Sequence record: MK054218.1
Direction: 5' to 3' (one strand)
DNA length: 11,658 nt
The position numbers and the translations under genes were made by a program. Shown here piece by piece: positions 1 through 11,658 of this stretch; the stretch's first letter is position 1, and every line of letters starts with the position of its first letter. Below the pieces are notes generated by a model that was given only the letters and a program-made list of their open reading frames with translations, made no database searches and was not told the DNA's origin.

Positions 1-237
<237 letters not shown>

Positions 238-254
238 TTCGCCTCAAGTATTAT

Positions 255-288
255 GGTTGCCAAAACATGTTTATAAGCATTGGCAACC
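255..288 (-). promoter_or_regulatory. Putative int promoter: TATA-like (C)TTATAAA flanked by a 9-bp inverted repeat
   Basis: GGTTGCCAA (255-263) and TTGGCAACC (280-288) enclose the TATA-like element at 270-277, about 33 nt upstream of the int ATG. Confidence 0.55.
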
Positions 289-539
289 CGTTAATTTTTG
301 CCGTGATTTGCGACGAATTGAAAGAAGACGGCAAAAAGTCCTCGGAAGTAATAATATATGATAATCTTGTTTCTAACGCGTTCAAGTGGACTGTACTTTA
401 CGAGAAGGCAATTATTAAGGTTAAGCAGGCAATAGGTAGGGCAATAAGGGGGCCTCAAGATTCCGCAACAATCTACCTAATTGACAAACGTTTCACATAC
501 AAGAACGTAATGGAGAAGATGGGCTTAGAGGTGGCCTAA
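267..539 (+). pseudogene. C-terminal remnant of a Rad3/XPD/DinG-family SF2 helicase
   Basis: AIIKVKQAIGRAIRGPQDSATIYLIDKRF matches the motif VI region of XPD/DinG helicases (QxxGRxIRxxxDxxxxxLxDxRF). No Walker A, DEAH or Fe-S region is present. The ORF-track 5' extension (45-266) is antisense to int. Confidence 0.8.
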
Positions 540-1133
540 ATGGTTGATAGGGAAACGCTTAGGAGGATTGTCCAAGAAAAATTAAAGAAAAATAAAGACG
601 GAAATAATAACTCAGCGACACAAAATAATTCAAAAAATGAAGTGTCGTTTGATAAAAATTCTCCGGAAGTTCAGAAAGGGTATAATGAAAATGTGTCGTT
701 TGTGTCGCCCAATTTAGTAAGCGACACACGAGAAAAATTCAAAAGCGACACAAACGACACAAATTCCTCTATCTCTCCAAATACTTCCGGAGAATTTTTA
801 GCAGAAGAGGAGAAAGAAATTGAAGACGGAAATAATAACTCAGCGACACAAAATAATTCAAAAAATGAAGTGTCGTTTGATAAAAATTCTCCGGAAGTTC
901 AGACAGAGAAAACCCAAAATGTTACGTTTGTTACGCACAATTTAGATGGCGTAACAAGAGAGAAATTCAAAAGCGTAACAAACGTAACAAATCCCCCTAT
1001 CTCTTCCCAAACTTCCGGAGAATTTAGCTCAGAAGAGAGTGAAAAAATTCAAAAAAGAATTAGTTGTATAGGTTCATTTTCGGCTTTTTCTTTTCTTCTT
1101 TCAAAAGCCTTTCAAAAAATTGCCTTAATATAG
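540..1133 (+). CDS. Low-complexity repeat protein (two 76-aa repeats) carrying an iteron-like DNA array; the C-terminal ~25 aa are probably read-through into the antisense of the next gene
   Basis: ATG directly follows the helicase-remnant stop, with RBS GAGGTGG. The protein repeat mirrors a 228-bp DNA duplication. Confidence 0.5.
   Translation: MVDRETLRRIVQEKLKKNKDGNNNSATQNNSKNEVSFDKNSPEVQKGYNENVSFVSPNLVSDTREKFKSDTNDTNSSISPNTSGEFLAEEEKEIEDGNNNSATQNNSKNEVSFDKNSPEVQTEKTQNVTFVTHNLDGVTREKFKSVTNVTNPPISSQTSGEFSSEESEKIQKRISCIGSFSAFSFLLSKAFQKIALI
595..1050 (+). repeat. Tandem 228-bp duplication (595-822 / 823-1050) with nested inverted repeats
   Basis: 595-675 is identical to 823-903 (81 bp). The remaining 147 bp align without gaps, with 39 mismatches by hand count. 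Inverted repeats: 653-670/783-800 (18 bp), 692-708/745-761 (17 bp), 884-898/1011-1025 (15 bp), 920-936/973-989 (17 bp). Confidence 0.97.
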
Positions 1134-1299
1134 GTACTTTTTCGATAGACAGTTCTTCTTCGGGTTCCATGTATTCCGTATTGTTTTCCTCATTAATATT
1201 TTCCTCTTTCACTATGTACGTAAAGCAGACAGTGACCCATACCCCGTTAGCTAGCCTAAATTCACGTGCTTTTTTCGAATAACTAGCTATTCTTCCCAA
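1060..1299 (-). CDS. Hypothetical protein, 79 aa (early/T5-like orientation); start uncertain (TTG)
   Basis: Purine-rich E/K-rich coding strand. It overlaps the tail of an upstream truncated minus-strand frame, as expected in an operon. Confidence 0.55.
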   Translation of the reverse strand: MGRIASYSKKAREFRLANGVWVTVCFTYIVKEENINEENNTEYMEPEEELSIEKVPILRQFFERLLKEEKKKPKMNLYN

Positions 1300-1343
1300 T
1301 CTTCTTCCGCCTCACTCAACTCCTCATCAATACTCAAAGTTTT
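1287..1343 (-). pseudogene. Acidic C-terminal stub of a lost gene (KTLSIDEELSEAEEDWEE*)
   Basis: Short minus-strand frame with coding-like acidic composition and no suitable start. It begins abruptly where the Cas4-like remnant begins on the other strand. Confidence 0.35.
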
Positions 1344-1346
1344 CTA

Positions 1347-1856
1347 ATGAGACATAACGGTAAAATAAAACAGAATTTACAAACTACAATGAAGATGCAC
1401 ATAGGTTCAGGTCTTCATATGCGTTTGCAATCAATACTTAGAAAGCATGGCTTTGAGGTTGAAAAGAGGGTTGAACGGAAGACGGCTTTGGGCTTTAACA
1501 TTGTAGGCAAAGTTGATGTTTATGACAAAGAAGAGAACACAATATACGAGTTGAAGTATACTCATCATGATAAGCTGGATAACGTTAGGCTCAACAACTA
1601 CCTCAGACAACTTAACTATTACATTGAAATGGCTAACGCTATGGCGGGCTATTTAATAATCGTGCATGCAGATGGTAGGGTGGAAGAGATAAAGAGGGAT
1701 TGGAGTGAGACAGACCTAGAGAGAAGGGCTAACGCTTTCGGGATTTCAGTTGAGGAAAACATCTTACCGCCGAGAAAGGCTAAGCCAGATAGCGAATGTA
1801 TGGAATGCCCCTTCTATAGCTTTTGTTGGAGGGATAGGAATGGAGTCAGGCAGTAA
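1347..1856 (+). CDS. Viral Cas4-like RecB/PD-(D/E)XK nuclease, probably N-terminally truncated
   Basis: GxxxH (GSGLH), GKVD, ELK, QLNYY and a C-terminal CMECPFYSFC cluster. The N-terminal fourth Fe-S cysteine is absent, both in the ORF and in the in-frame sequence just upstream. Confidence 0.88.
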   Translation: MRHNGKIKQNLQTTMKMHIGSGLHMRLQSILRKHGFEVEKRVERKTALGFNIVGKVDVYDKEENTIYELKYTHHDKLDNVRLNNYLRQLNYYIEMANAMAGYLIIVHADGRVEEIKRDWSETDLERRANAFGISVEENILPPRKAKPDSECMECPFYSFCWRDRNGVRQ

Positions 1857-2217
1857 AACGCACCTGAGGAGTAACCATAAGGGGATTACGATTCACGTGA
1901 CTTTGGAAGAACTTGAACGCTATCATTCTCTGACGCCGGAACAGAAAAGAATAATTAGGGCTATTGTTAAAGCGTTAATCCATAACCCCCAGTTGTTAGA
2001 TGAAAGCGGTTATCTCTATAAGTTACTGACAAGTAAAGCAGTATCGCCTTACGTTTGTCCCCTTTGCTTAATGCCATTTTCTTCATCAGTTAGTCTGAAG
2101 CAACACATCCGTTATACGGAACACGCAAAGACTTGTCCCATATGCAAAAAGGAGTTTAGAAACACTGATTCAACCCTAGACCATGTTTGCAAAAAACATA
2201 ATATCTGCGTTAGTTAG
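1840..2217 (+). CDS. Tandem C2H2 zinc-finger DNA-binding protein (SSV1 B129 homolog), 125 aa
   Basis: CPLCLMPFSSSVSLKQHIRYTEH and CPICKKEFRNTDSTLDHVCKKH. ATG 1840 follows GGAGGGATAGGA and is preferred over the track start at 1750. Confidence 0.92.
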   Translation: MESGSKTHLRSNHKGITIHVTLEELERYHSLTPEQKRIIRAIVKALIHNPQLLDESGYLYKLLTSKAVSPYVCPLCLMPFSSSVSLKQHIRYTEHAKTCPICKKEFRNTDSTLDHVCKKHNICVS

Positions 2218-2553
2218 GTGATGTTGATGGATAGGCTAAAGGTCTTATGGCTCATCTTCATTTTAGGTAACTTATTTGATTATGGTGCAACACTTCTTTT
2301 TTCCTATCTTGGAGTGCTTTATATGGATCGCAATGTTTTCATAGGATCTAACACAAGTTTCTTAGACGTTCTGATAACCTTAACCGGTGAGAAGTTGTTA
2401 TTATTAAGTGGAGTTTATTGGTTTACTAAGTTATTCGATTATCTAAAAATCAGTAAGTATAAGTGGATGGGCTTATTGCCTTTTGCAATAATAACTATCC
2501 TTATAGTATGTATACTCGTAATAGCCATTTTACTTTTTTACTTAACTTCTTAG
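2218..2553 (+). CDS. Small integral membrane protein (3 predicted TM, DUF5658-like N-L-x-D-x-x-x-T pattern); true start may be ATG 2227
   Basis: Hydrophobic segments and GNLFDYGAT. RBS GGTGA at 2216-2221. Confidence 0.75.
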   Translation: MMLMDRLKVLWLIFILGNLFDYGATLLFSYLGVLYMDRNVFIGSNTSFLDVLITLTGEKLLLLSGVYWFTKLFDYLKISKYKWMGLLPFAIITILIVCILVIAILLFYLTS

Positions 2554-2567
2554 GCCCTTTATAAAGT
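2551..2567 (+). promoter_or_regulatory. BRE/TATA promoter TAGGCCCTTTATAAAGT (T3-like), copy 1 of 3
   Basis: TTTATAAA lies about 25 nt upstream of the leaderless ATG 2591. Identical 17-mer at 4223 and 8188. Confidence 0.88.
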
Positions 2568-2590
2568 TACACTTTCCTTTTTCGCTTACA

Positions 2591-3511
2591 ATGAGGAAGT
2601 ACCTACTAATGGGAGTTTCGCTATTCCTACTATCTCTAATCTTTCTAAACGCATCTGCGCTAACGGCAAGCCAACTAGGTGCAAACTATACGGAAAGTTC
2701 GATCGGTACTAAATTCGTGACTGCTATTGCATATTCTGATGAATATCAAGGCATCGGCCCATGTCCTCCGTATTATGGCTATTGGCCTAACACAATTATC
2801 AGTGCCAATGAGAATATCTATCTGCCAAATAGTTTCACATACTATCCATCTGTTACGGGAACGGATCAGATAATAGTTGGAGTAGGGATAGGTAGTAACG
2901 GAGTTTATATGCCTACCTATCCCGCCTGGAATCTCAACGATCTTCCCAACGAGACAATATACGCCGGGTTCATGTTCACAGTCAAACCTGATAATTCATA
3001 CTCTGTTTCATATATAGCCTTCGGTACTGGTCCAAATCTTTCCTATATAAACATTATTAATGGGAACGTGCCGAAAGGTTCTATAAGCTGGTTATATGTC
3101 CAAGAATACTATAATCAAGGTAAACAAACATTAACAATTACATGGATAGTGCACTATACAAACAATTCACAGTTCACTTATACCACGATACTATCCTATG
3201 TTGTATATTCATGGTCCGCTTTGTCATTTGTGGCTACAAATTCGATTGGTACAAACGAGTTTAACCAATTACCATTCGTAAATGGTGGTTCTGTTAGTTT
3301 CTGGTTCTCATACTTATCTAATGGCCAAATATATGGTGGGCCTGGGACTCCTGCATCGGGGACATCTATTTATGCAGAGGTATATTCATTGTCAAAAACA
3401 TCTTACGCAAACTCTATGCTTTCTAATGTGACTAGCGCAAGTGGAGTTACCGGAAGCTGGTCCTATACATTTTCCTTCTCTGAGAACGGGCAAACTACCT
3501 ACGGGCTATAA
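2591..3511 (+). CDS. Secreted beta-rich S/T/Y/N/G-rich protein, 306 aa (positional analog of SSV1 A291); candidate viral toxin
   Basis: Signal peptide MRKYLLMGVSLFLLSLIFLNASA, several N-x-S/T sequons, no C-terminal membrane anchor, own strong promoter. Confidence 0.8.
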   Translation: MRKYLLMGVSLFLLSLIFLNASALTASQLGANYTESSIGTKFVTAIAYSDEYQGIGPCPPYYGYWPNTIISANENIYLPNSFTYYPSVTGTDQIIVGVGIGSNGVYMPTYPAWNLNDLPNETIYAGFMFTVKPDNSYSVSYIAFGTGPNLSYINIINGNVPKGSISWLYVQEYYNQGKQTLTITWIVHYTNNSQFTYTTILSYVVYSWSALSFVATNSIGTNEFNQLPFVNGGSVSFWFSYLSNGQIYGGPGTPASGTSIYAEVYSLSKTSYANSMLSNVTSASGVTGSWSYTFSFSENGQTTYGL

Positions 3512-3512
3512 A

Positions 3513-3522
3513 AATTTATATG
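3513..3522 (+). promoter_or_regulatory. Putative TATA box (AATTTATATG) for a leaderless transcript of ORF 3545 (Tx-like)
   Basis: TTTATAT at 3515-3521, about 24 nt before ATG 3545. Confidence 0.55.
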
Positions 3523-3544
3523 TTTCAAGGTAATTCTTTTTTTT

Positions 3545-3814
3545 ATGGATAAGAAACTAAAGGCTGAACTATTGTTCTTAATACCTTTTACTTTTTGTTG
3601 GTTTATCCTTTTTTGGGTCTACAGTTATAGTATATTTACCATAATTTTTTTCATACCTTTTATGTCTCTATCTTACATAGGCTTTCTAAGACTCTTAAAG
3701 AACGGATATAAAAACTTCCCTTACTATAGAACTATAATGATAACATTAGGTTTGATTACGACAATATCCACGATAATTGTAATATACATTTTTACTCATC
3801 CTCTTCCAATATGA
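3545..3814 (+). CDS. Small membrane protein, 89 aa, about 3 TM helices
   Basis: Three F/I/L-rich segments separated by basic loops; very AT-rich DNA. Confidence 0.75.
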   Translation: MDKKLKAELLFLIPFTFCWFILFWVYSYSIFTIIFFIPFMSLSYIGFLRLLKNGYKNFPYYRTIMITLGLITTISTIIVIYIFTHPLPI

Positions 3815-3859
3815 TTAATGGTGGTCTAATGTCGGTACTACATATGTGTAAGGAATAGC

Positions 3860-3883
3860 TTTTTTACTTTTTTCTTTTTTTTT
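3860..3883 (+). terminator. Oligo-T tract; putative archaeal terminator or promoter-proximal element
   Basis: TTTTTTACTTTTTTCTTTTTTTTT between ORFs 3545 and 3890. Confidence 0.45.
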
Positions 3884-3889
3884 AAAAAC

Positions 3890-4225
3890 ATGGAATTCCT
3901 TTCACTTCTAATTTTCGTTTCCGGAATAATCGTGGCTTTCTTAACTCTTTATTTCTCACCGGATTTTGGAAGGGTAAAACCAAATAAAAGAAGCCTATCG
4001 ACCATATTTCTATCAATAGCCCTTACGGGAATAGGTTTATGGCTCTATTCCATCGACCATCCAACATATATAGCACAACCATATGAAGGATCGCCAGAAG
4101 GGCTTTATTATGGCCCGTCACCTACTATACATGTTCCCCCACCATGGTACGCTAACTTATGGCCATTCATAATCGCAATAGGCTTAAGTATACTTATAAT
4201 TCCAATGATTAGACCCAAAAATTAG
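3890..4225 (+). CDS. Small membrane protein, 111 aa, 3 TM with a Pro/Tyr-rich loop
   Basis: Hydrophobic segments at the N-terminus, middle and C-terminus; loop QPYEGSPEGLYYGPSPTIHVPPPWY. Confidence 0.78.
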   Translation: MEFLSLLIFVSGIIVAFLTLYFSPDFGRVKPNKRSLSTIFLSIALTGIGLWLYSIDHPTYIAQPYEGSPEGLYYGPSPTIHVPPPWYANLWPFIIAIGLSILIIPMIRPKN

Positions 4226-4239
4226 GCCCTTTATAAAGT
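4223..4239 (+). promoter_or_regulatory. BRE/TATA promoter TAGGCCCTTTATAAAGT for the VP4 operon, copy 2 of 3
   Basis: Identical 17-mer, 22 nt before ATG 4261. Confidence 0.88.
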
Positions 4240-4260
4240 CATTCAATTTTTTATCGCTTA

Positions 4261-6627
4261 ATGAAGTGGGGACTATTATTCGCTATTTTCTTTATATCTC
4301 TTTTTTCTCTCAACTCCTTAGCTTTACTTATTGGAGGAGGGCCTAATAATAGCGGTGCGGGAGTTTATACTCAAACTATAACGGTAAATGGAGGAACAGT
4401 AAGCACGAAAGTTAATGGTTCAACGCTCTCTAATGCACCTTGGCTTAACCCAACTTACGTTTCGATATACAACACTTACTACCTCCAAGTTTTGCCGAAT
4501 CAAGAATATATTAGTAATAACGTATCTCTTTCTCTTTCATCATCACAAATCGCTCTAAACGTCACATGGTTGCTAGCTTCATCTAGCAATACCGGATCCT
4601 ACGGTTCAATCGCCATAGGCTACGGTGTAAATTTCCCTTCAGGCTTTACGACTAGCTATGCACCCGCATTACCTTACGCCTCCGATGGGATTGTGGTTTA
4701 TCTGGAAAAAGGGAGTTTCCCAACGTATAGAATATTTGTATACTTTGACGGTGTGAAACAGTTAAACGTGTCTGTGGGCTCAATCAGTGTTGGGCAACAA
4801 ATAGGTTTAGGGTTCTGGTACTTACCCGCTTCAAACCAACTTTACGTTTATTACTATAACGGTACTCTAAAGACTTTTTCAATAATACCGGGCCTATCGT
4901 TGAATACCGTAAATAGTAATTATGTTATTGACGCTCAGAATATTGGGCCGGGTTTTGGGTACGGTCAGTGGGTGATAATGCGTTATCAATATTTTACACA
5001 AGTTACGGCACAACTGACTATTAGTTATTTCGCATTATCGTATAACATCTATCATTTCTTAATGGCCTATGCGGGTGCGGGGAATCCCGTAAACATTTCA
5101 GGTGCATTATATAGCATATCGGGCATAGTTTCACAGAAAAACTTTACAATAACGGGTATACAACAAGGCTTAGCATACACCTTTAACATTTTAGGGAAGT
5201 CAAACGGATTATATTTACTTTACACGGGGCCAATCGAAGGTAACCCACCAACATGGTACGTAAACGTAACCATAGGGCTTCAAATCGTTACATCTCAAGT
5301 AACGATAAACTACAACCTAACTATACCCGTAATTGTTGAGGGCTATGCACTATATCCTAGCGTCAATTTGCCTAGCGGAACTTATCTAAGCGGGCAAACA
5401 ATCAGTTTTACACTGACCAACTTCGTAGGTTATCCCTCAAATCTAGGTTATTATACTGCAGTATCAGAGCGGGCTAACGTATCAATAAACGGTGTTACGT
5501 ACCCGATACCCTATAGTTTTACGCCTATAGTCCAAGTACCTACTACTTATTACTACACAGTAATCGTAACTGAAGGTCCAATATCAATGATAGATTATAG
5601 TGGTAGTTTCACAGTATTGCCCGCACAGAGTTACCCCGTGTTATTCGTTACTTCTTATCCTAGAATCGGGATATTAGGGCAAACGATAACGATAACGTTC
5701 CAATTCACTTACAATAGTCCCGTCTCGAATGTAACACAATCCGCATTAACGCAAACTACTAGCACTTTCGCATTTACTTATGCATCTATAATAACGTCGT
5801 CATCATTGATACAATTCAAGGCGTATTGGCTTAATGCAAGTGATGGTTTAATAATCATTACGCAAAGTCAGAATTTCTTAATCCCCTTCAACTATGTAGG
5901 GCTAACATGGTACAATAATAGCGTTAATACAGTGCAGATTAACGTTATTAATAACGCGTTACAATTAACGATTAACGGTGGTACGCTTAACATAGCTAAC
6001 TCATCTAAAGTGATAGGCTTAGGCTTCTACTACGGTGCGGGGAAACTTGTACTGAACTGGTTCTTCGTTAGCGGTATCGTTTTACAAAGTGCTACGGCTA
6101 ACCAAGCATATATAATATTGATCGGGACTAACCCATCAACATTGACACAATATGTAACGGGTTACACTAACGCTAGCGGTTTCGGAAACGTAACGCTAAA
6201 ACTATCCTATAGTCCTTATGAGCTTATTGACGTATATTGGTACGGCGTTACATATCAGATACTAAACATTAGCGTTTCAAATACTACTACAGTAAGCAGC
6301 ACCACCACAGTGAATACCACTACTCTTAACTACAACTACACTAAGCCGTTTAGTAATAACATTGCCCCTAACTCCTCACTATATAACTTCTCTCAATACC
6401 AACCATGGGCGGAAATCATCGGGATTGTGGTTACTTTACTTATCGCGTTACTAGGTTGGAAATTCGGCGGTAGTGCGGGTGCATCGGGTGGTGCGGTTAT
6501 GGGGCTAATCGCCACTGCATATTTGGGGCTATTACCATGGTACATCTTTTATGTCTTTGTACTTGGCATAGCGCTACTGTTAGCGAAAACGTTTGTGGAT
6601 AGGTTTATGGGGAGGGAGGAAGAATGA
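4261..6627 (+). CDS. vp4: Virion tail/receptor-binding glycoprotein VP4 (SSV1 C792 homolog), 788 aa
   Basis: Signal peptide, long beta-rich N/T/S/Y body with many sequons, Thr-rich linker, C-terminal TM helices; size and position match. Confidence 0.92.
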
Positions 6628-6866
6628 CGGACGCAATTTCCCTAGCTTTACAAACCGGTTTAGGGCCGGTAATTGCGGTCGTTATTATCATAGGAATGAT
6701 GGGACTAACATACAAGATGGCGGGCAAAGTACCGGCGATTCTTGTAGGTATAGCCTCAACTTTCACCCTAACTTTCATGAATTTCTTACCGCTTTTTTGG
6801 GGCGTTGCGATCATTTTGGGTCTGATAGCCGGGTTAATCTTAGGAGGTGGTAGGGATGGGGACTAA
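6624..6866 (+). CDS. Small membrane protein (SSV1 B78 homolog), 80 aa
   Basis: ATGA overlap with the VP4 stop; hydrophobic; syntenic. Confidence 0.88.
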
Positions 6867-7356
6867 GCTAATAGTATACGTCCTATTGTTTGACGTCTTT
6901 CTAGCGTTAATGGTAGGTGCTTACGGCGGTATAACGCCACCGTCAATTCCACCGATACCTTCATATAGTTTTGACCAAGCTTTAGCGTCATCAATTGTAT
7001 GGACTGTGGGGTGGCCACCCATTACGTTATGGGGGCCCGTGACACTTATTCCGCCGTTTTCCATTTTAGGGGCTAACTTTCCGGGACTAACTTTACCGGG
7101 TGTAACGATACCGGGTGTAACATTGTTTAGTATATCGTTTTCATGGTTGGCCCCAATCCTTTACCTGATAGGTTGGCTAACGTGGATGTTTCAGACAACC
7201 GATAGTGTTTTAGGGTATCTAATATCTATATTCACTTCTTCTATAGGATTGTTAGCGAATGTACCGACAGTAGGGCCGTTTTTGACGGCTTTCGTTTTGA
7301 TTGTCAATTTCATCCTCATTTGGGAAGTGGTGAAATTGATAAGGGGTGGGCCATGA
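6856..7356 (+). CDS. Membrane protein (SSV1 C166 homolog), 166 aa from ATG 6856
   Basis: [33 protein letters not shown]; Pro-rich region; RBS GGAGGTGG; syntenic. Confidence 0.9.
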   Translation: MGTKLIVYVLLFDVFLALMVGAYGGITPPSIPPIPSYSFDQALASSIVWTVGWPPITLWGPVTLIPPFSILGANFPGLTLPGVTIPGVTLFSISFSWLAPILYLIGWLTWMFQTTDSVLGYLISIFTSSIGLLANVPTVGPFLTAFVLIVNFILIWEVVKLIRGGP

Positions 7357-7697
7357 CTTATAACGCTAATGAGATTAGGGCTAAGATACTAAGGCGTAAA
7401 ATCTTAGAGCTTATTGTGGAAAACTACGTACTCTCTGCTTCTCTCATCTCTCACGCACTGCTTTTGAGCTATGCAACAGTGCTAAGACACCTCAGAATCC
7501 TTAACGAAGAAGGATACATAGAGTTGTACAAAGAAGGTAGGACGTTATATGCTAAAATTAAAGAGAACTCTAAACAAATTCAGATTCTGAATTCAGAACT
7601 GGAGGGGTTTAAAAAGCTTAGCGACAAGCCCCTATTGACCAAGTATGAGCCTAGTACTATTGCAAAGACCAAAGCTAAGAAAGGGCGAAGCAACTAA
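7353..7697 (+). CDS. Winged-helix (ArsR-like) DNA-binding protein (SSV1 B115 homolog), 114 aa
   Basis: RRKILELI...[39 protein letters not shown] wHTH pattern; ATGA overlap with the C166 stop. Confidence 0.9.
7601..7616 (+). promoter_or_regulatory. Capsid operon promoter (T1/T2-like) embedded in the B115 3' end
   Basis: GGAGGGG-TTTAAAAA (TATA at 7608-7615), about 30 nt upstream of the VP1 ATG. Confidence 0.7.
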
Positions 7698-7908
7698 CAT
7701 AGGAGCAATTTTAGGGCTATTCATCTTTATACTTATAGGCATAGTACTATTGCCCGTCATCGTTAGCCAAGTAAATAACTTGACTTCCGGTACTGCACCT
7801 AGCGTAACCGGCACAAACGCCACACTCTTACAACTAGTCCCACTGTTCTATATCCTAGTCTTAATCATAGTCCCCGCCGTAGTGGCGTACAAGATTTACA
7901 AAGAGTAA
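7645..7908 (+). CDS. vp1: Major capsid protein VP1 precursor, 87 aa (14-aa leader, mature protein EATNIG...)
   Basis: KG|[73 protein letters not shown]; two TM helices and two sequons. An in-frame TGA at 7636 bounds the ORF. Confidence 0.97.
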
Positions 7909-8128
7909 AGGTGTGAGGGATGGAAATCAGTTTAAAGCAAATAATTTTTTTGACTATCTTCATCGTTTTAGGTATAGCGTTATTATCGCCAATTGTTAGT
8001 TACGTAAATTTGCTAACCACACCGTCTTTCACAACTGTTTCAGGTACTGTGACGCAAACTAATCCTAACCCGCAATACGTAGGAAGCTCAAACGCACCCA
8101 TCTTACAACTAGTCCCACTGTTCTATAT
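7826..8128 (+). repeat. 28-bp exact direct repeat shared by vp1 (7826-7853) and vp3 (8101-8128)
   Basis: TCTTACAACTAGTCCCACTGTTCTATAT at both sites, 275 bp apart. Confidence 0.95.
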
Positions 8129-8186
8129 ACTTGTACTGATAGTTGTACCGGCGGTTGTAGCGTATAGGATATACAAGTCTGACTGA
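7920..8186 (+). CDS. vp3: Minor capsid protein VP3, 88 aa
   Basis: VP1 paralog sharing [25 protein letters not shown]; RBS GGTGTGAGGG. Confidence 0.95.
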
Positions 8187-8187
8187 A

Positions 8188-8204
8188 TAGGCCCTTTATA
8201 AAGT
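8188..8204 (+). promoter_or_regulatory. BRE/TATA promoter TAGGCCCTTTATAAAGT (T9-like), copy 3 of 3
   Basis: Identical 17-mer, about 20 nt before ATG 8225. Confidence 0.88.
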
Positions 8205-8224
8205 CATAATTTTTTCCTCTTTTG

Positions 8225-8473
8225 ATGAGTGCGTTAGGGGATGTAATCTACATTCTAGGCATTCTAATCCCTCTTCTAGGTTTAATCGTAAGGAACTATC
8301 TTATCGATTTATTAGGCTTTATCATGGGTACTATGGGCTTTCTTGTCTTTGTACAGAACTATACGGACATAACGTTCTCGGCGTCAAACTTTTATTTAGC
8401 CCTTCTGCCGTTAGCGTTTGGACTCATGGACTTTGCGTTTTTCTTCAATTGGCTCAAGGAGGAAAGAATATGA
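8225..8473 (+). CDS. Membrane protein (SSV1 A82 homolog), 82 aa
   Basis: MSALGDVIYILGILIPLLGLIVRNYL; 3 hydrophobic segments; first gene of the T9-like operon. Confidence 0.9.
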   Translation: MSALGDVIYILGILIPLLGLIVRNYLIDLLGFIMGTMGFLVFVQNYTDITFSASNFYLALLPLAFGLMDFAFFFNWLKEERI

Positions 8474-8727
8474 TGAGGTGGATGTCAAATGGTCTTGTTA
8501 GTCCCAAAAATATACGCCGAAATAGCCCTAGGTTTCGATTCAATTATGCTCATTACTGCTTTGCTATTCAGAAAGCCAAAGCCCAAGAAAAAACAATCAA
8601 AAGAACAATTGACGAATGGAAAACTTCTAGGGTACTATCTCGTAGGGGGTTCGGCATTAGCCTTACTCGTAGGGCATTATGCCTTCTACACCACTTACGT
8701 AACCTATTTTACGGGATTATTGATTGA
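8473..8727 (+). CDS. Overlapping basic ORF (SSV1 C84-like), 84 aa; expression uncertain
   Basis: Alternative frame overlapping the A92-like gene; start is coupled to the A82 stop. Confidence 0.4.
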   Translation: MRWMSNGLVSPKNIRRNSPRFRFNYAHYCFAIQKAKAQEKTIKRTIDEWKTSRVLSRRGFGISLTRRALCLLHHLRNLFYGIID

Positions 8728-8773
8728 CGCTTTCGTATTTTATCTCGGTTTGGAGGTGTTAAGGCGTGTCTGA
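8489..8773 (+). CDS. Membrane protein (SSV1 A92 homolog), 94 aa
   Basis: RBS GAGGTG 8 nt upstream; TM segments around a Lys-rich loop; stop overlaps the next start. Confidence 0.82.
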   Translation: MVLLVPKIYAEIALGFDSIMLITALLFRKPKPKKKQSKEQLTNGKLLGYYLVGGSALALLVGHYAFYTTYVTYFTGLLIDAFVFYLGLEVLRRV

Positions 8774-9605
8774 CGGTAAGTTAGTTTCCGCATGGGAGGA
8801 AGAGCTTAAGAAAGCTCAGACACTTGATGAGCTAAAGCAAAAATATGAAGAAGTACAAAAGCAGATAGCGGATGGTAAAACGCTAAAGAGATTATACAAA
8901 GTTTATGAGAAAAGGCAAACTGAATTAATGCTACAACAATACAAACAATTGAAAGCGGAATTAGCTCAAAGAAAGAAGGTAAAGAAGAAGGATAAGGCGG
9001 ATATCAGAGTTAAAGTAGTTAAGAAGTGGATTAATTCGCGTCTGTTTACTGCGGAACATTACGTAGCAATGTTACAACAATCAAAGGACGGCTTGCAATT
9101 GTTGTTTATGAGGAAAGCGAAACTGGTGGAAAACCAGGGTTATCTAATGCTAGAGAACCGCAAACTAAGAAAGAGTTGGGTCTTAAACGGTGAACCTTTG
9201 CTACTTGAAAAGAACAAATTCCCGTTTGGGAAAAAGTTTGTGGCCGTTCATTTCGTTTTGCCTGATTATCCTTATACTTTAGATTTGGTAGTAGATGAGA
9301 AGATTAAACAATTAACGCTTAAGACGCTTAACGCACCACAGGTGATCCACAGTATTATCCGTACTAAGTTCTTTGAAGCACTTGCACGGGTAGGCAGTGG
9401 TATCGATTATACTATGCTTATTATAGGCGTTATCATGGGTATCGGGATTGGAGTTGCGATAGGCTTTGGGATTGCAAACGCTAACCTGAGTCACTTACTT
9501 GCTCAACATGTGACAAATAGCACAGTAACGCATACTACTACCACACCGCCTACTACAACTACCAGTCCTTCATTCACTATCCCGGCAAATAGTACAAAGG
9601 GGTGA
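8766..9605 (+). CDS. Core protein (SSV1 B277 homolog), 279 aa: N-terminal coiled coil, C-terminal TM, Thr/Pro tail
   Basis: MSDGKLVSAWEEELKKAQTL...; GTG start with GGAGGTG RBS; syntenic. Confidence 0.92.
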   Translation: MSDGKLVSAWEEELKKAQTLDELKQKYEEVQKQIADGKTLKRLYKVYEKRQTELMLQQYKQLKAELAQRKKVKKKDKADIRVKVVKKWINSRLFTAEHYVAMLQQSKDGLQLLFMRKAKLVENQGYLMLENRKLRKSWVLNGEPLLLEKNKFPFGKKFVAVHFVLPDYPYTLDLVVDEKIKQLTLKTLNAPQVIHSIIRTKFFEALARVGSGIDYTMLIIGVIMGIGIGVAIGFGIANANLSHLLAQHVTNSTVTHTTTTPPTTTTSPSFTIPANSTKG

Positions 9606-9611
9606 ACTGAG

Positions 9612-10070
9612 ATGGCTAAGAAGGCTCAGACGGTTGAAGAATTGAAGAAAGAAAATGAAGAGTTAAAGAACAAGTTGGCAAAGTTAGAGGCGTTAATAAA
9701 CAATCAAGAAGAGGAAGATGAAGAGTTACAAGAGATAGAGAACCCGTATACGGTAACTAATAGAACTATTTCAGAGTTAGTTAGCCCTAAGGATACGATG
9801 TTCTACCTTTCCGGTAACCAGATATCGCTTATACTTACGGCGTTTGAGTTTGCTAAACTTCCTAGTTATTTCGGTGAGGAACCGGTAACGGAACTTGCCG
9901 AGTTTGCCCACAAATTAAAGCATTATCTGGTTAGCAAGGGCGGAAGAGGGCGTAGAGATATACTCAGAGTGCTAAGAGTCAGTTCAGGCCAAACTAGGGA
10001 AAACGTAAACAAGTCTCTCATAAGTAAGATATTGAAGGGGGCGGATATGGATGAAGGGGAAGAAGGTTAA
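9612..10070 (+). CDS. Core protein (SSV1 A154 homolog), 152 aa
   Basis: N-terminal coiled coil and acidic stretch, SKGGRGRRDILRVL motif; directly upstream of the ATPase. Confidence 0.9.
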   Translation: MAKKAQTVEELKKENEELKNKLAKLEALINNQEEEDEELQEIENPYTVTNRTISELVSPKDTMFYLSGNQISLILTAFEFAKLPSYFGEEPVTELAEFAHKLKHYLVSKGGRGRRDILRVLRVSSGQTRENVNKSLISKILKGADMDEGEEG

Positions 10071-10788
10071 GCATATTAATACGGGACAATTAGGCAAGAT
10101 GGTTATCAATGAAATGAAGGATAACGGTTTCCAGAGCATTTTGGTATTTGGCAAACAAGGTGCGGGTAAAACTACGTATGCCCTAAAAGTTGGGACACGA
10201 ATCCTACAGTACTTGTATCCGGATTTGACGGAACATGACGCATGGTGGCAAGCCTATAATTTGATGGTTTTCACATTGGATGAGGCGATAGAAAAGCTCA
10301 TGAGTGTAGTGGAAATGCATGAAAAGGGTAACGTAAACTATAGGTTACCGTTCCTGATCATTGATGACGCTTCAATAGACTTAATCAAGTATGCGTGGCG
10401 TGAAGAACAAAACATTCAGTTTGCAAAACTGAACAACTTAGCAAGGACTTGGAGTGTGGCACTTATCTTTACTACTCCTTGGATAGAGGACATTCAAAAA
10501 TTCTTGAGGGAAAAAGCATGGATAGTAGTTCAAGTGCAAAAGTACGGCTCATCTAAAAACGGCGATTATCCTAAGTCAATAGCATGGATTTACAAGAGGA
10601 CTATTAAACTGATTGACGGGGAATTTAAGGGTAAATATGTGGAAAAATACTACGATATCTTTAGGAGGGAAATGCCGAATGATCTTTACGAAGAGTACAT
10701 AAAGAGAAGAGACGGAGTGATGAAGAGGATAGCTAATGAGGTACTCGCTATAATGCGTGAAAAGTCCTCAAAACTACCGAGTACCTAA
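10051..10788 (+). CDS. P-loop ATPase (SSV1 B251 positional homolog; described as DnaA-like), 245 aa
   Basis: Walker A GKQGAGKT and Walker B FLIIDD; lies between the A154 homolog and int. Confidence 0.9.
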   Translation: MKGKKVKHINTGQLGKMVINEMKDNGFQSILVFGKQGAGKTTYALKVGTRILQYLYPDLTEHDAWWQAYNLMVFTLDEAIEKLMSVVEMHEKGNVNYRLPFLIIDDASIDLIKYAWREEQNIQFAKLNNLARTWSVALIFTTPWIEDIQKFLREKAWIVVQVQKYGSSKNGDYPKSIAWIYKRTIKLIDGEFKGKYVEKYYDIFRREMPNDLYEEYIKRRDGVMKRIANEVLAIMREKSSKLPST

Positions 10789-10828
10789 AGTTGTTTTTCT
10801 TTCAATTCTACGAAAGGTAGGTACTCGG
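10777..10828. terminator. 11-bp inverted repeat enclosing a T-rich tract between the convergent ATPase and int genes
   Basis: CCGAGTACCTA (10777-10787) / TAGGTACTCGG (10818-10828), with TTGTTTTTCTTT in the spacer. Confidence 0.5.
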
Positions 10829-10842
10829 AACGGGTTGAGATT

Positions 10843-11658
10843 TCAAACGTGGGGGACACCCCCACAGTTACTCCTTAACCATTCCGCGTATTTACGATAA
10901 TGTTCTTTCGCAATTCCGAAAAGCGATACGTAATGTTGGGTTAAAATGCGGGTGGGCTTCCTACCCTGGATAAAGTCAATAACGTCTAACGGTATGCCTA
11001 TTTCAGCCATTTTAGACGCGACAAACTTTCTAACATATTTTATCGCAACGGCATCCTTATTTCGTCGCTCAAAATCACTTATCGCCCATTGTGTTATGTC
11101 AACTTTGCGTAACGGCGTTAAGTGGAATACGTAGAAAACGCCTTTATATCCGCGTTGCCATGATAGCGGATAATAGCATAGGAGTGGGGTTGTAGGGGTA
11201 CCCCCTACGTCGCATATATCACGTTCAGGTTCCTTCAAAATGCGGAGTATTTCGCTCAGTCTACTACCGCTCTCTAACGCTAAGCGGTAGACGAGATAGA
11301 CATTTTCGCTATATTCTTTCGCTATTTTGAGCGTGCGTTTGATGTCTTCTAAAGTCGGTATGTAAATATCGGCGTTGGTCTTCTTCACTTTAACGACCTT
11401 TAATATCTTCTCGGCGAAATCGTCACTTATTATTCCGCGTGAGGCTAAGAATTTCGCAAATAGTCTATACGCTTTCTGAGAATTCCTAGTTTCGCGGAAC
11501 GGCTTCGCTAAAGCGGAAACGTACTCTTTAGCCGTCTTTTCTGTTACTTTACGTTCTGTTAGTAACCAATCGTAAAACGCCTTTATGTTGCCTTCCGACG
11601 CATATTGGCGTAAATTGGCAACCAACGCAATTTTACGACGTTCTTCTCTCTCTTTTCC
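10843..11658 (-). CDS. int: Integrase catalytic part, Int(C), SSV-type tyrosine recombinase; frame open to the window end
   Basis: ESGSRLSE (catalytic Arg), KYVRKF (K-x-x-R), QGR, TQHY (catalytic Tyr). The frame extends upstream of the track start 11625 as [12 protein letters not shown]. Confidence 0.97.

Follow-up and report, generated by a model that had tools for sequence, protein, structure and literature searches.

[quoted passage not shown] Sequence comparison confirms its right-hand edge, 1334/1335, as a real deletion scar common to the short-genome group. Taken as a whole, we regard it as probable that the element combines this scar with life mainly as an integrated, poorly productive provirus.

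The stretch of DNA analysed (the window, 11,658 nt) is 100% identical to its source record MK054218, Sulfolobus spindle-shaped virus M.06.0.8v1.SSV (11,658 bp), linearised at the attachment site. Among the integrated SSVs of S. islandicus, Pauly et al. 2019 (PMC6452263) described seven "short genome" members (MK054209, 211, 212, 214, 216, 217 and 218), M.06.0.8v1.SSV among them, with 9–10 variable genes compared with 22–28 otherwise, so the class itself is already published and not new. In the parts of that source drawn on here, the class is defined via size and gene counts, and breakpoints, Cas4 truncation and promoter loss are not described. What we add is the exact anatomy of the scar: its breakpoints, the loss of early regulators and of the divergent promoter region, the loss of a cysteine from the Cas4-like protein and a b129-type gene left without its promoter. 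Fuselloviruses are model spindle-shaped archaeal viruses whose needed genes and control elements are only partly known, and the short Kamchatka genomes are natural deletion mutants; the published observation that short genomes escape CRISPR targeting now becomes a testable question of autonomous viruses versus quiet proviruses riding on long relatives.

Genome layout and reference group

The layout of MK054218 is common to six further records of 11.3–11.9 kb, and at 11,658 bp the genome falls within the short-genome Mutnovsky lineage of the Fuselloviridae, which combines a size below 12 kb with the core genes. The integrase, DnaA-like B251 and B129 were named through family matches (Pfam and PHROG profiles), while the end-filament, structural and B277-side genes pair with genes of the long relatives (tblastn, megablast). 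VP1, VP3, the end-filament gene and all other core genes are present as open ORFs, in agreement with the original prediction of an element several kb below the usual fusellovirus size with its morphogenesis genes intact. The choice of SSV1 as reference was mistaken: SSV1 has no Cas4-like gene (PMC6080066), and the proper reference is the Kamchatka group of SSV9, SSV12, SSV13 and SSV14.

The circular record is opened inside the attachment core, and the provirus adjoins tRNA-Arg in host contig L011, the published integration site (PMC6452263 Table 1). GenBank annotates the SSV-type integrase, which spans the attachment site, as a single CDS joined over the record start (10843..237). Upstream of it, the CTTATAAA site also occurs in M.04.0.13.SSV, inside a 99% identical block (1–342), and we infer it to be a candidate integrase promoter retained in the short genome.

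Table 1 Features of the window, with the evidence for each.
Feature	Position	Strand	Evidence and remarks
Attachment core, identical to tRNA gene 3' part	1..44	+	Rfam tRNA, model positions 29–71, 5'-cut
SSV-type tyrosine integrase, N-terminal part	1..237	-	Pfam SSV1_ORF_D-335, E 1e-32; circular form continues from 11658
TATA-like box CTTATAAA	270..277	-	7.4 bits, crude TATA matrix; ~30 nt upstream of integrase ATG 237
Left scar junction, integrase-upstream block / helicase tail	357..380		Comparison with long relatives
Rad3/XPD-type helicase relic, last 54 codons only	375..539	+	Annotated ORF 267–539; Pfam Helicase_C_2 positions 118–163 of 170
5' fragment of 627-aa accessory gene (phrog_24043)	540..1052	+	phrog_24043 positions 1–97 of 471
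Orphan filler, 282 nt	1053..1334		100% identical in seven short SSVs; source not detected
79-codon ORF within filler (doubtful as a gene)	1060..1299	-	TTG start; 36-codon version from ATG 1170
Supposed 'acidic tail', 18-codon open frame	1290..1343	-	Read from sequence; stop codon at each end
Right scar junction (main finding)	1334..1335		Nucleotide alignments with SSV13, SSV12, SSV9, M.04.0.13
5'-truncated Cas4-like nuclease gene	1335..1856	+	First start ATG 1347; ORF 1347–1856, 169 aa
B129-type C2H2 zinc-finger gene	1840..2217	+	Pfam B129_C2H2-zf, E 1e-14; phrog_9259, E 2e-73
First strong TATA box right of junction, TTTATAAA	2558..2565	+	7.8 bits; upstream of 306-aa toxin-locus gene
Integrase, C-terminal catalytic part	10843..11658	-	Pfam Phage_integr_3, E 3.5e-55; phrog_5127 integrase, E 5e-103

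Anatomy of the compound scar

Homology to the full-length relatives begins exactly at 1335 (blastn), the window reading ...ATCAATACT/CAAAGTTTTC where the long relatives read ...GCCTTCGA/CAAAGTTTTC, with the slash marking 1334/1335. Long-relative contigs from four public sequencing runs likewise stop matching at exactly 1335, and their unmatched letters past this point encode the missing Cas4 N-terminus. A deletion junction had been predicted near 1343; the junction is real, but the true breakpoint lies 9 nt further left. The predicted removal of the divergent early control region also stands, whereas the idea of a single clean junction does not, 1334/1335 being the right edge of a compound scar. 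What had been taken for the minus-strand tail of an acidic gene is an 18-codon open frame with stops at both ends and no relatives (Table 1).

At the left junction, window positions 1–342/356 match the start of the long-relative genomes, and the match to SSV14 and M.04.0.13 resumes at 381, aligned with their position 2875; in between, the window lacks about 2.5 kb of these two genomes. The helicase relic corresponds to residues 429–482 of the 482-aa helicase of M.04.0.13 (87% identity, tblastn), and the adjoining fragment matches residues 1–44 of the 627-aa protein of the same virus (tblastn). The 228-nt tandem duplication (repeat family D1, copies 589–816 and 817–1044) is rich in inverted repeats (I1–I14). 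Over 541–1039 two of the short SSVs diverge from the window, and they are 225–335 nt shorter overall.

From a long, SSV12/SSV14-like ancestor, one deletion took away about 2.5 kb between the integrase and the tail of the helicase gene, and another about 4.4 kb from the start of the 627-aa gene to Cas4-like codon 33; 282 nt of filler now occupy this second gap. The deletion removed the divergent early promoters, all small early regulators and Cas4-like codons 1–32, and with these codons the first cysteine of the cluster. The deletions, the filler and the absence of these promoters, regulators and codons can be read directly from the comparisons.

Loss of the early control region and truncation of the Cas4-like gene

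When all annotated early and accessory proteins of SSV13, SSV9 and M.04.0.13 were searched against the window by tblastn, no match beyond gene fragments was found. The small early regulators (CopG-like, C80-type zinc finger, DUF5658/A100-type and winged-helix repressor) are missing, as had been predicted, and the sole regulator match falls within the B129 gene, as a weak cross-match between zinc fingers. A TATA matrix, which is a crude consensus from general knowledge of Sulfolobus promoters that weak or atypical promoters may escape, finds no site of 5 bits or more in 581–1649, in line with the earlier statement that no clear TATA box is present in either direction. The same matrix scores 7–8 bits at the other promoters of the virus and in the divergent control regions of the long relatives, where paired boxes of this strength lie upstream of T6-like genes (SSV13 4040–4087, M.04.0.13 6045–6092, SSV9 9351–9353); the back-to-back TATA boxes between opposed early genes that characterise a T5/T6-type divergent region are absent from the window. 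A bacterial sigma-70 scan was set aside as irrelevant to archaea.

The B129-type gene shares its first 17 nt with the end of the Cas4-like ORF, encodes a protein 100% identical to that of SSV13 and now lacks an upstream T6-type promoter. In SSV1, deletion of b129 abolishes infectivity (PMC3367457). An essential b129-type gene deprived of its normal promoter would depend for its expression on read-through or a weak cryptic promoter. An internal promoter for b129 at 1651 (ATTTAATA) was considered and rejected; although most relatives retain the site, SSV8 does not have it, and since the coding sequence around it is itself conserved, its retention is no evidence for a promoter. The TTTATAAA cassette of the first strong box to the right recurs at 4230 and 8195, and in an RNA run of a close relative the summed contig depth is far higher over 2601–3000 than over 2401–2600.

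The Cas4-like ORF 1347–1856 matches Pfam Cas_Cas4 and PDDEXK_1 from profile position 31 onward (Cas_Cas4 23.0 bits, cut-off 22.7) and phrog_1706 from position 69 of 293. Full-length homologues of 204–205 aa in SSV13, SSV9, M.04.0.13 and the co-resident M.06.0.8v2 start M(K)SRL...TIWVTELSRCLRQSFLMRH; alignment with them shows that codons 1–32 have no counterpart in the window and that ATG 1347 corresponds to their internal Met37. Together, profile matches and alignment bear out the prediction that the gene lacks its N-terminus. The nuclease motifs D, ExK and QxxxY are retained (GKVDVY, YELKYT and LRQLNYY align with Cas4 SSO0001, PDB 4IC1). The four-cysteine iron-sulfur site, an N-terminal Cys plus a C-terminal C-x2-C-x5-C, is incomplete with 3/4 cysteines, and the deleted N-terminal TELSRC segment aligns with the Cys31 region of SSO0001. 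Because the N-terminal cysteine is deleted and three are left, we classify the ORF as a truncated remnant and not as an intact member of the family; its product, if made at all, would be crippled.

Two further lines concerning this gene were dropped. The Cas4-like gene of the free virus SSV12 had seemed naturally broken, but its split annotation stems from an N in the record, and dN/dS on the truncated gene was abandoned, since the short lineage, too young for such an analysis, acquired its variation by recombination.

A quiet provirus or an autonomous minimal virus

The evidence leans towards a weakly productive provirus rather than an autonomous minimal virus. With structural, replication and integrase genes intact under their own promoters, the element would survive mainly in the integrated state and be poorly productive, since its Cas4-like product is predicted to be crippled and its b129-type gene to lack the normal promoter. 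Help in trans could come from a long SSV, for example one integrated in the same strain; M.06.0.8v2, with a full early region and a full-length Cas4, is such a co-resident. At Mutnovsky, all free isolates are long (5/5) and 7/11 integrated ones are short (PMC6452263 Table 1; short integrated versus free, Fisher one-sided p 0.029), and circular forms were reported for 3/11 Mutnovsky proviruses, short and long pooled, versus 12/16 from Yellowstone, all of them long (PMC6452263). In an SSV10 Cas4-like deletion mutant, halos cease within 5 days and the DNA persists; insertions in the same gene abolish function, with possible polar effects mentioned by the authors (PMC6080066). Isolate counts, circular forms, the SSV10 and SSV1 mutants and the co-resident long SSV thus argue, indirectly and by analogy, that the short SSVs may be attenuated. 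A search of public sequencing runs found none containing this genome; the five with matches carry only long relatives.

A serious but rather unlikely alternative sees in the short genome a near-minimal fusellovirus that is fully autonomous, with a scar that is neutral or even advantageous through the removal of CRISPR targets along with accessory genes, and with b129 expressed from remaining promoters or from a cryptic one in the filler or the Cas4-like remnant. All core genes are intact, weak TATA-like sites occur at 1125, 1191 and 1651, and a laboratory SSV9 variant that lost bases 2823–9693 (10,513 bp remaining) still makes clearing zones (PMC6452263). According to the TATA scan, this deletion takes in the divergent control region of SSV9, so a close relative tolerates losing the region, which counts against attenuation. 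So does the spread of the short lineage, found in nine strains from samplings ten years apart (PMC6452263), together with the mosaic relationship between its structural and integrase modules and those of free viruses (proteins encoded in 1840–4222, for instance, are 100% identical to those of SSV13), as fits an element still moving and recombining. Against autonomy, the short form has never been recovered as a free virus (0/5 isolates), more than 1 kb of sequence upstream of the essential b129 homologue contains no recognisable promoter, a T6 run at 1270–1275 lies in the path of plus-strand read-through, and the Cas4-like gene, without whose homologue the SSV10 mutant loses halos within days, is truncated.

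We hold as doubtful the stronger proposal that the short SSVs are natural, still infectious near-minimal fuselloviruses that dispense with early regulators, T5/T6-type promoters and a working Cas4-like nuclease, and in which the island left between the two deletions (589–1044, where the palindromic beginning of the 627-aa gene is duplicated) would be an indispensable cis element such as a replication origin. If true, it would fix the minimal gene set and the replication origin of fuselloviruses.

The orphan filler

Searches with the filler found nothing beyond the seven short SSVs in phage (blastn, tblastn) or plasmid collections, and no source in viral, metagenome and non-Sulfolobus genome contigs scanned with peptide and exact DNA patterns. 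Its ORF 1060–1299 has only identical copies among 5.8 billion proteins, a single other match among 1.8 billion representatives, which is compositional (a 3161-aa repeat protein), and no relative in a protein atlas.

That the filler is a new control module, encoding a small regulator or anti-defence peptide (ORF 1060–1299, in full or as the 36-aa version) under a promoter and terminator of its own, or acting as a replacement promoter rightward, we consider improbable. The layout is gene-like, with a weak TATA-like box ~25 nt upstream of ATG 1170 and T-runs past the stop, and there is a weak resemblance between the C-terminal 33 aa of the ORF and a 39-aa ORF conserved in M.04.0.13 (5499–5618) and SSV7; this similarity has a tblastx E of 0.2, not significant search-wide, and a pairwise shuffle gave 0 of 5000. 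The complete conservation of the filler in seven genomes is equally explained by a very young lineage, as recombination cannot import variation into a stretch for which the long viruses offer no homologous partner, and the ORF lacks relatives in both protein searches.

Origin and direction of the deletion

The segment 1040–1350 is 100% identical in seven separately assembled short SSVs (7/7 records) and has no relative in any other record. The scar of the seven short genomes probably has one origin, because 343–1350 is about 100% identical among them, repeat copy number aside, while other modules range from 48 to 100%.

We favour loss in the short lineage over gain in the long one because the window holds fragments of genes that are complete in the long relatives, namely the helicase tail, the head of the 627-aa gene and the Cas4 body. 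An ancestral short form, from which the long genomes arose through insertion of the early region, is very improbable; nothing beyond the bare size difference speaks for it, and it is contradicted by these broken pieces of three genes, as well as by the four-cysteine full-length Cas4-like genes of the distant fuselloviruses SSV2, 4, 5, 7, 8, 9 and SSV10. An artefact of the read-baiting pipeline by which the integrated SSVs were assembled, conceivable in that reads were baited with known SSV sequences and the filler is unlike any of them, has next to no probability, as seven assemblies agree to the base and the same arrangement stands in a 1.69-Mb contig of an independent whole-genome host assembly (GCA_000245115.2).

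Comparison with known systems

The small satellites pSSVx and pSSVi depend on fusellovirus helpers and are not known to have virion genes. The window carries VP1, VP3 and the end-filament gene and, because these and the other core genes are retained, is not a satellite of that kind; helper dependence is nevertheless a possible way of life for the element. The short-genome Mutnovsky SSVs do not differ in kind from the window, all seven sharing the scar, the truncated Cas4-like gene and the filler. The long Kamchatka SSVs (SSV13, SSV14, SSV12, M.04.0.13.SSV and M.06.0.8v2.SSV) agree with the window in gene order rightward of 1335 and are 92–100% identical to it over the shared structural, replication and toxin-locus genes. 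Their 5–7 kb extra comprises a full helicase, the 627-aa gene, divergent TATA pairs and 6–8 small early genes, and their Cas4-like protein has 205 aa and four cysteines, in contrast to the truncated ORF of the window.

The laboratory SSV9 variant (PMC6452263) resembles the window in having lost most of the same accessory region, including the divergent control region. According to the SSV9 gene table, it also lost most of its integrase, which the window keeps, and retained a full-length Cas4-like gene together with the CopG-like, zinc-finger and DUF5658 genes, all of which the window has lost. The SSV10 B205 deletion mutant (Goodman and Stedman 2018, PMC6080066) is a viable fusellovirus without a working Cas4-like gene whose halos stop at ~5 days. 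Its deletion was engineered in frame, with the T6 promoter and the regulators kept, whereas the window has lost both and retains a 169-aa remnant ORF; by analogy, this mutant is a plausible model for a quiet short provirus.

The element is a short-genome SSV

Megablast against the phage collection matched the window at 100% over all 11,658 bases to MK054218.1, the Sulfolobus spindle-shaped virus strain M.06.0.8v1.SSV of Sulfolobus islandicus from the Mutnovsky volcano, Kamchatka, a circular genome whose linear record is opened at the attachment site. Its sequence was assembled from strain M.06.0.8, where it sits as a provirus in a tRNA-Arg gene; the strain also harbours a second SSV of 14,972 bp (Pauly et al. 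2019, PMC6452263). The same study devotes a section to "short genome" SSVs (<12 kb), comprising seven records from nine carrier strains sampled in 2000 and 2010, with 9–10 variable genes compared with 22–28 in long genomes and with accessory genes that are rare CRISPR spacer targets. M.06.0.8v1.SSV is a member of this Mutnovsky group, and both genome and class are already known; the original prediction had offered, as one of two options, a near-minimal fusellovirus that falls several kb short of SSV1. As far as the texts consulted show, the breakpoints, compound scar, missing cysteine and orphaned b129 are new.

The junction lies at the edge of a compound scar

Nucleotide alignment shows a break between 1334 and 1335, where the window reads ...ATCAATACT/CAAAG and the long relatives read ...GCCTTCGA/CAAAG. 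Homology to SSV13, SSV12, SSV14 and M.14.25.SSV begins exactly at 1335 (blastn), and the match to contigs of four public runs containing long relatives ends at 1335, with the unmatched run-on letters past this point encoding WVTELSRCLR. The predicted deletion junction is therefore real, but it lies at 1334/1335 and not near 1343. The minus-strand acidic gene tail said to abut it is only a frame of 18 codons, flanked by stops and reading from 1343 to 1290, in a region with no relative outside the short SSVs, and was rejected as a gene remnant. An independent host whole-genome assembly (GCA_000245115.2, 1.69-Mb contig) has the same structure beside a tRNA-Arg gene, showing that the arrangement is not an artefact. 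ARAGORN reads the anticodon of this adjoining gene (11028–11102 of the host contig region L011) as TCG, whereas tRNA-Arg-GCG is listed for the short SSVs (PMC6452263). On the filler side of the junction, the 9-mer ATCAATACT (1326–1334) has one other copy in the genome, 104 nt away in the Cas4-like gene (1430–1438), which may reflect chance or the way in which the junction formed.

The junction forms the right-hand border of a compound scar made up of gene fragments and a filler. Relative to SSV14 or M.04.0.13.SSV, ~2.5 kb (343–2874) and ~4.4 kb (about 3,320–7,680) are missing, and 5.3 kb of SSV13 (351–5619) is replaced by 978 nt. The early small regulators were correctly predicted to be absent: tblastn of all annotated early and accessory proteins of SSV13, SSV9 and M.04.0.13.SSV found none in the window except the scar fragments. 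On the right of the junction, the products of the genes from B129 through the one for 111 aa (3890–4225) are 100% identical to SSV13 (tblastn). The tandem duplication survived between two deletions, which suggests a cis-acting role for 589–1044. Its two copies share 82% identity and their inverted repeats are nested; M.03.0.27.SSV and M.16.12.SSV are 54% identical to the window over 541–1039 and 225–335 nt shorter overall.

Features of the attachment site, the scar and the genes to its right
Feature	Position	Strand	Remark
tRNA gene, 3' part	1–44		attachment site
SSV-type integrase gene	10843–11658 joined to 1–237	-	spans record ends
Block shared with the start of long genomes (N-terminus of the integrase, region upstream of it)	1–342/356		match to long genomes
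Rad3/XPD-type helicase gene	about 375–536		last 54 codons only
627-aa accessory gene (phrog_24043)	540–1052		first ~44 codons
Tandem duplication, 228 nt	589–816 and 817–1044		in 627-aa gene fragment; many inverted repeats
Filler, 282 nt	1053–1334		
Cas4-like remnant, 169 aa	1347–1856	+	
B129-type zinc-finger gene	1840–2217		overlaps Cas4-like remnant end by 17 nt

The Cas4-like gene is truncated

The Cas4-like ORF has matches to two Pfam families, Cas_Cas4 and PDDEXK_1, and its phrog_1706 hit begins at position 69 of the profile. Full-length homologues in SSV13, SSV9, M.04.0.13.SSV and the co-resident M.06.0.8v2.SSV have 204–205 aa and begin M(K)SRL...TIWVTELSRCLRQSFLMRH; their first 32 codons have no counterpart in the window, bearing out the predicted lack of an N-terminus. 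Although open from 1287, the plus frame contains no ATG, GTG or TTG before 1347; the first start it offers corresponds to Met37 inside the full-length protein. The SSV13 protein aligns with the Cas4 protein SSO0001 (PDB 4IC1), placing the deleted TIWVTELSRC at TIYVTDLVRC. In Cas4 this segment carries the first cluster cysteine (Lemak et al. 2013, cited in PMC6080066). The remnant retains the nuclease motifs D, ExK and QxxxY and the C-terminal C-x2-C-x5-C, leaving three cysteines, and its product, if made at all, is probably crippled. A four-cysteine site is present in all SSV Cas4-like ORFs known to Goodman and Stedman (PMC6080066), a rule to which the short SSVs are natural exceptions. The SSV12 gene (MK054204) is not truly disrupted, its two-ORF annotation stemming from ambiguous N bases (~9440, ~9645).

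b129 has no recognisable promoter

Scanning with a crude TATA matrix of our own construction, based on the general Sulfolobus consensus, showed the cassette aggcccTTTATAAAgt at 2558, 4230 and 8195 (spans 2551–2572, 4223–4244 and 8188–8209), each preceding a gene block by ~30 nt (toxin-locus gene, end-filament gene and the block from 8222, respectively), as well as TTTAAAAA at 7608, just ahead of VP1, and CTTATAAA at 277–270 (-), ~30 nt upstream of the integrase ATG. With this matrix no site of at least 5 bits was found over 581–1649, the best in 1040–1400 scoring 4.9, whereas the long relatives have paired 7–8 bit boxes upstream of T6-like genes in their divergent regions (SSV13 4040–4087, M.04.0.13.SSV 6045–6092, SSV9 9351–9353), in line with the earlier remark that no TATA box is evident near the junction. 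The Cas4-like remnant, the B129-type gene and the 111-aa membrane gene are therefore left without a recognisable promoter. A run of six T residues (1270–1275) lies in the path of plus-strand read-through.

Loss of the b129 promoter matters because b129 deletion abolishes SSV1 infectivity (PMC3367457). In the SSV10 Cas4-like gene, transposon insertions abolish function, possibly because they are polar on the b129 homologue that follows, and after a clean deletion halos cease after ~5 days while viral DNA persists (PMC6080066).

The heptamer CTGTACA, which looks like a candidate operator, has 7 copies in M.06.0.8v2.SSV (2484–2514 and 3420–3513), SSV13 and M.03.0.42.SSV, all in both divergent control regions, a count reached by 0/200 shuffles; short genomes have 0–1 copies, and SSV9, SSV12 and SSV14 types also lack it. 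Just inside the attachment core (45–95), a G/C hairpin GGGGGAGGAATCCCCC and, after it, a T-rich plus-strand run lie where they could terminate the transcript of the reconstituted tRNA gene. At the position of the published fusellovirus 'toxin locus' (PMC8628083), 2591–4225 encodes a 306-aa secreted protein and two small membrane proteins 100% identical to SSV13; in two of the other short SSVs this position holds another allele.

The short form probably arose once

Three genes intact elsewhere are present in the window as pieces, and full-length, four-cysteine Cas4-like genes occur in the distant fuselloviruses SSV2, 4, 5, 7, 8 and 9 and also in SSV10 (PMC6080066), so the short form is the derived state. 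The stretch 1040–1350 is 100% identical in 7/7 short genomes and absent from every other phage record searched. In the seven-way alignment, 343–1350 is essentially invariant but for repeat copy number, and identity in the other modules varies between 48 and 100%, a mosaic pattern. Together these suggest a single ancestral event and later module exchange with co-circulating long SSVs, which are unable to recombine inside the stretch private to the short genomes.

No source for the filler was found in any collection searched, and its 79-codon minus-strand ORF matched identical copies only. The last 33 residues of this ORF weakly resemble a conserved 39-aa ORF immediately to the left of the control region of M.04.0.13.SSV, SSV12, SSV14 and SSV7, both ending LYN; the pairwise score was reached by 0/5,000 shuffles, although the search-wide tblastx E was only 0.2. 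Should this similarity be genuine, the filler would be a piece of the deleted neighbourhood that was inverted and has diverged, which we offer as a lead only.

Autonomous virus or quiet provirus

We lean, at slightly better than even, towards a weakly productive provirus. Short genomes account for 0/5 free Mutnovsky isolates and 7/11 integrated ones (Fisher one-sided p 0.029; counts from PMC6452263), and circular forms were reported for 3/11 Mutnovsky proviruses, short and long pooled, compared with 12/16 from Yellowstone, all long (PMC6452263); the Yellowstone rate applied to the four long Mutnovsky proviruses alone predicts 3, the total seen. The exclusively long free isolates and the few circular forms count towards a weak provirus, as do the lost b129 promoter and the truncated Cas4-like gene. 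M.06.0.8v2.SSV, a long SSV in the same cell, carries the complete early region together with a Cas4-like gene of full length, and could act in trans. An autonomous virus seems rather unlikely to us; in its favour are the viability of an SSV9 deletion variant (PMC6452263), the intact core genes, the occurrence of the lineage in nine strains across ten years and its mosaic modules. Other options share the remainder.

Comparison with known systems

M.06.0.8v1.SSV behaves like a natural multi-gene deletion mutant. It is not a satellite of the pSSVx/pSSVi type, since it retains virion genes. Its closest experimental parallels are the SSV10 Cas4-like deletion and the SSV9 laboratory variant lacking bases 2823–9693 (10,513 bp left), which still forms clearing zones (PMC6452263).
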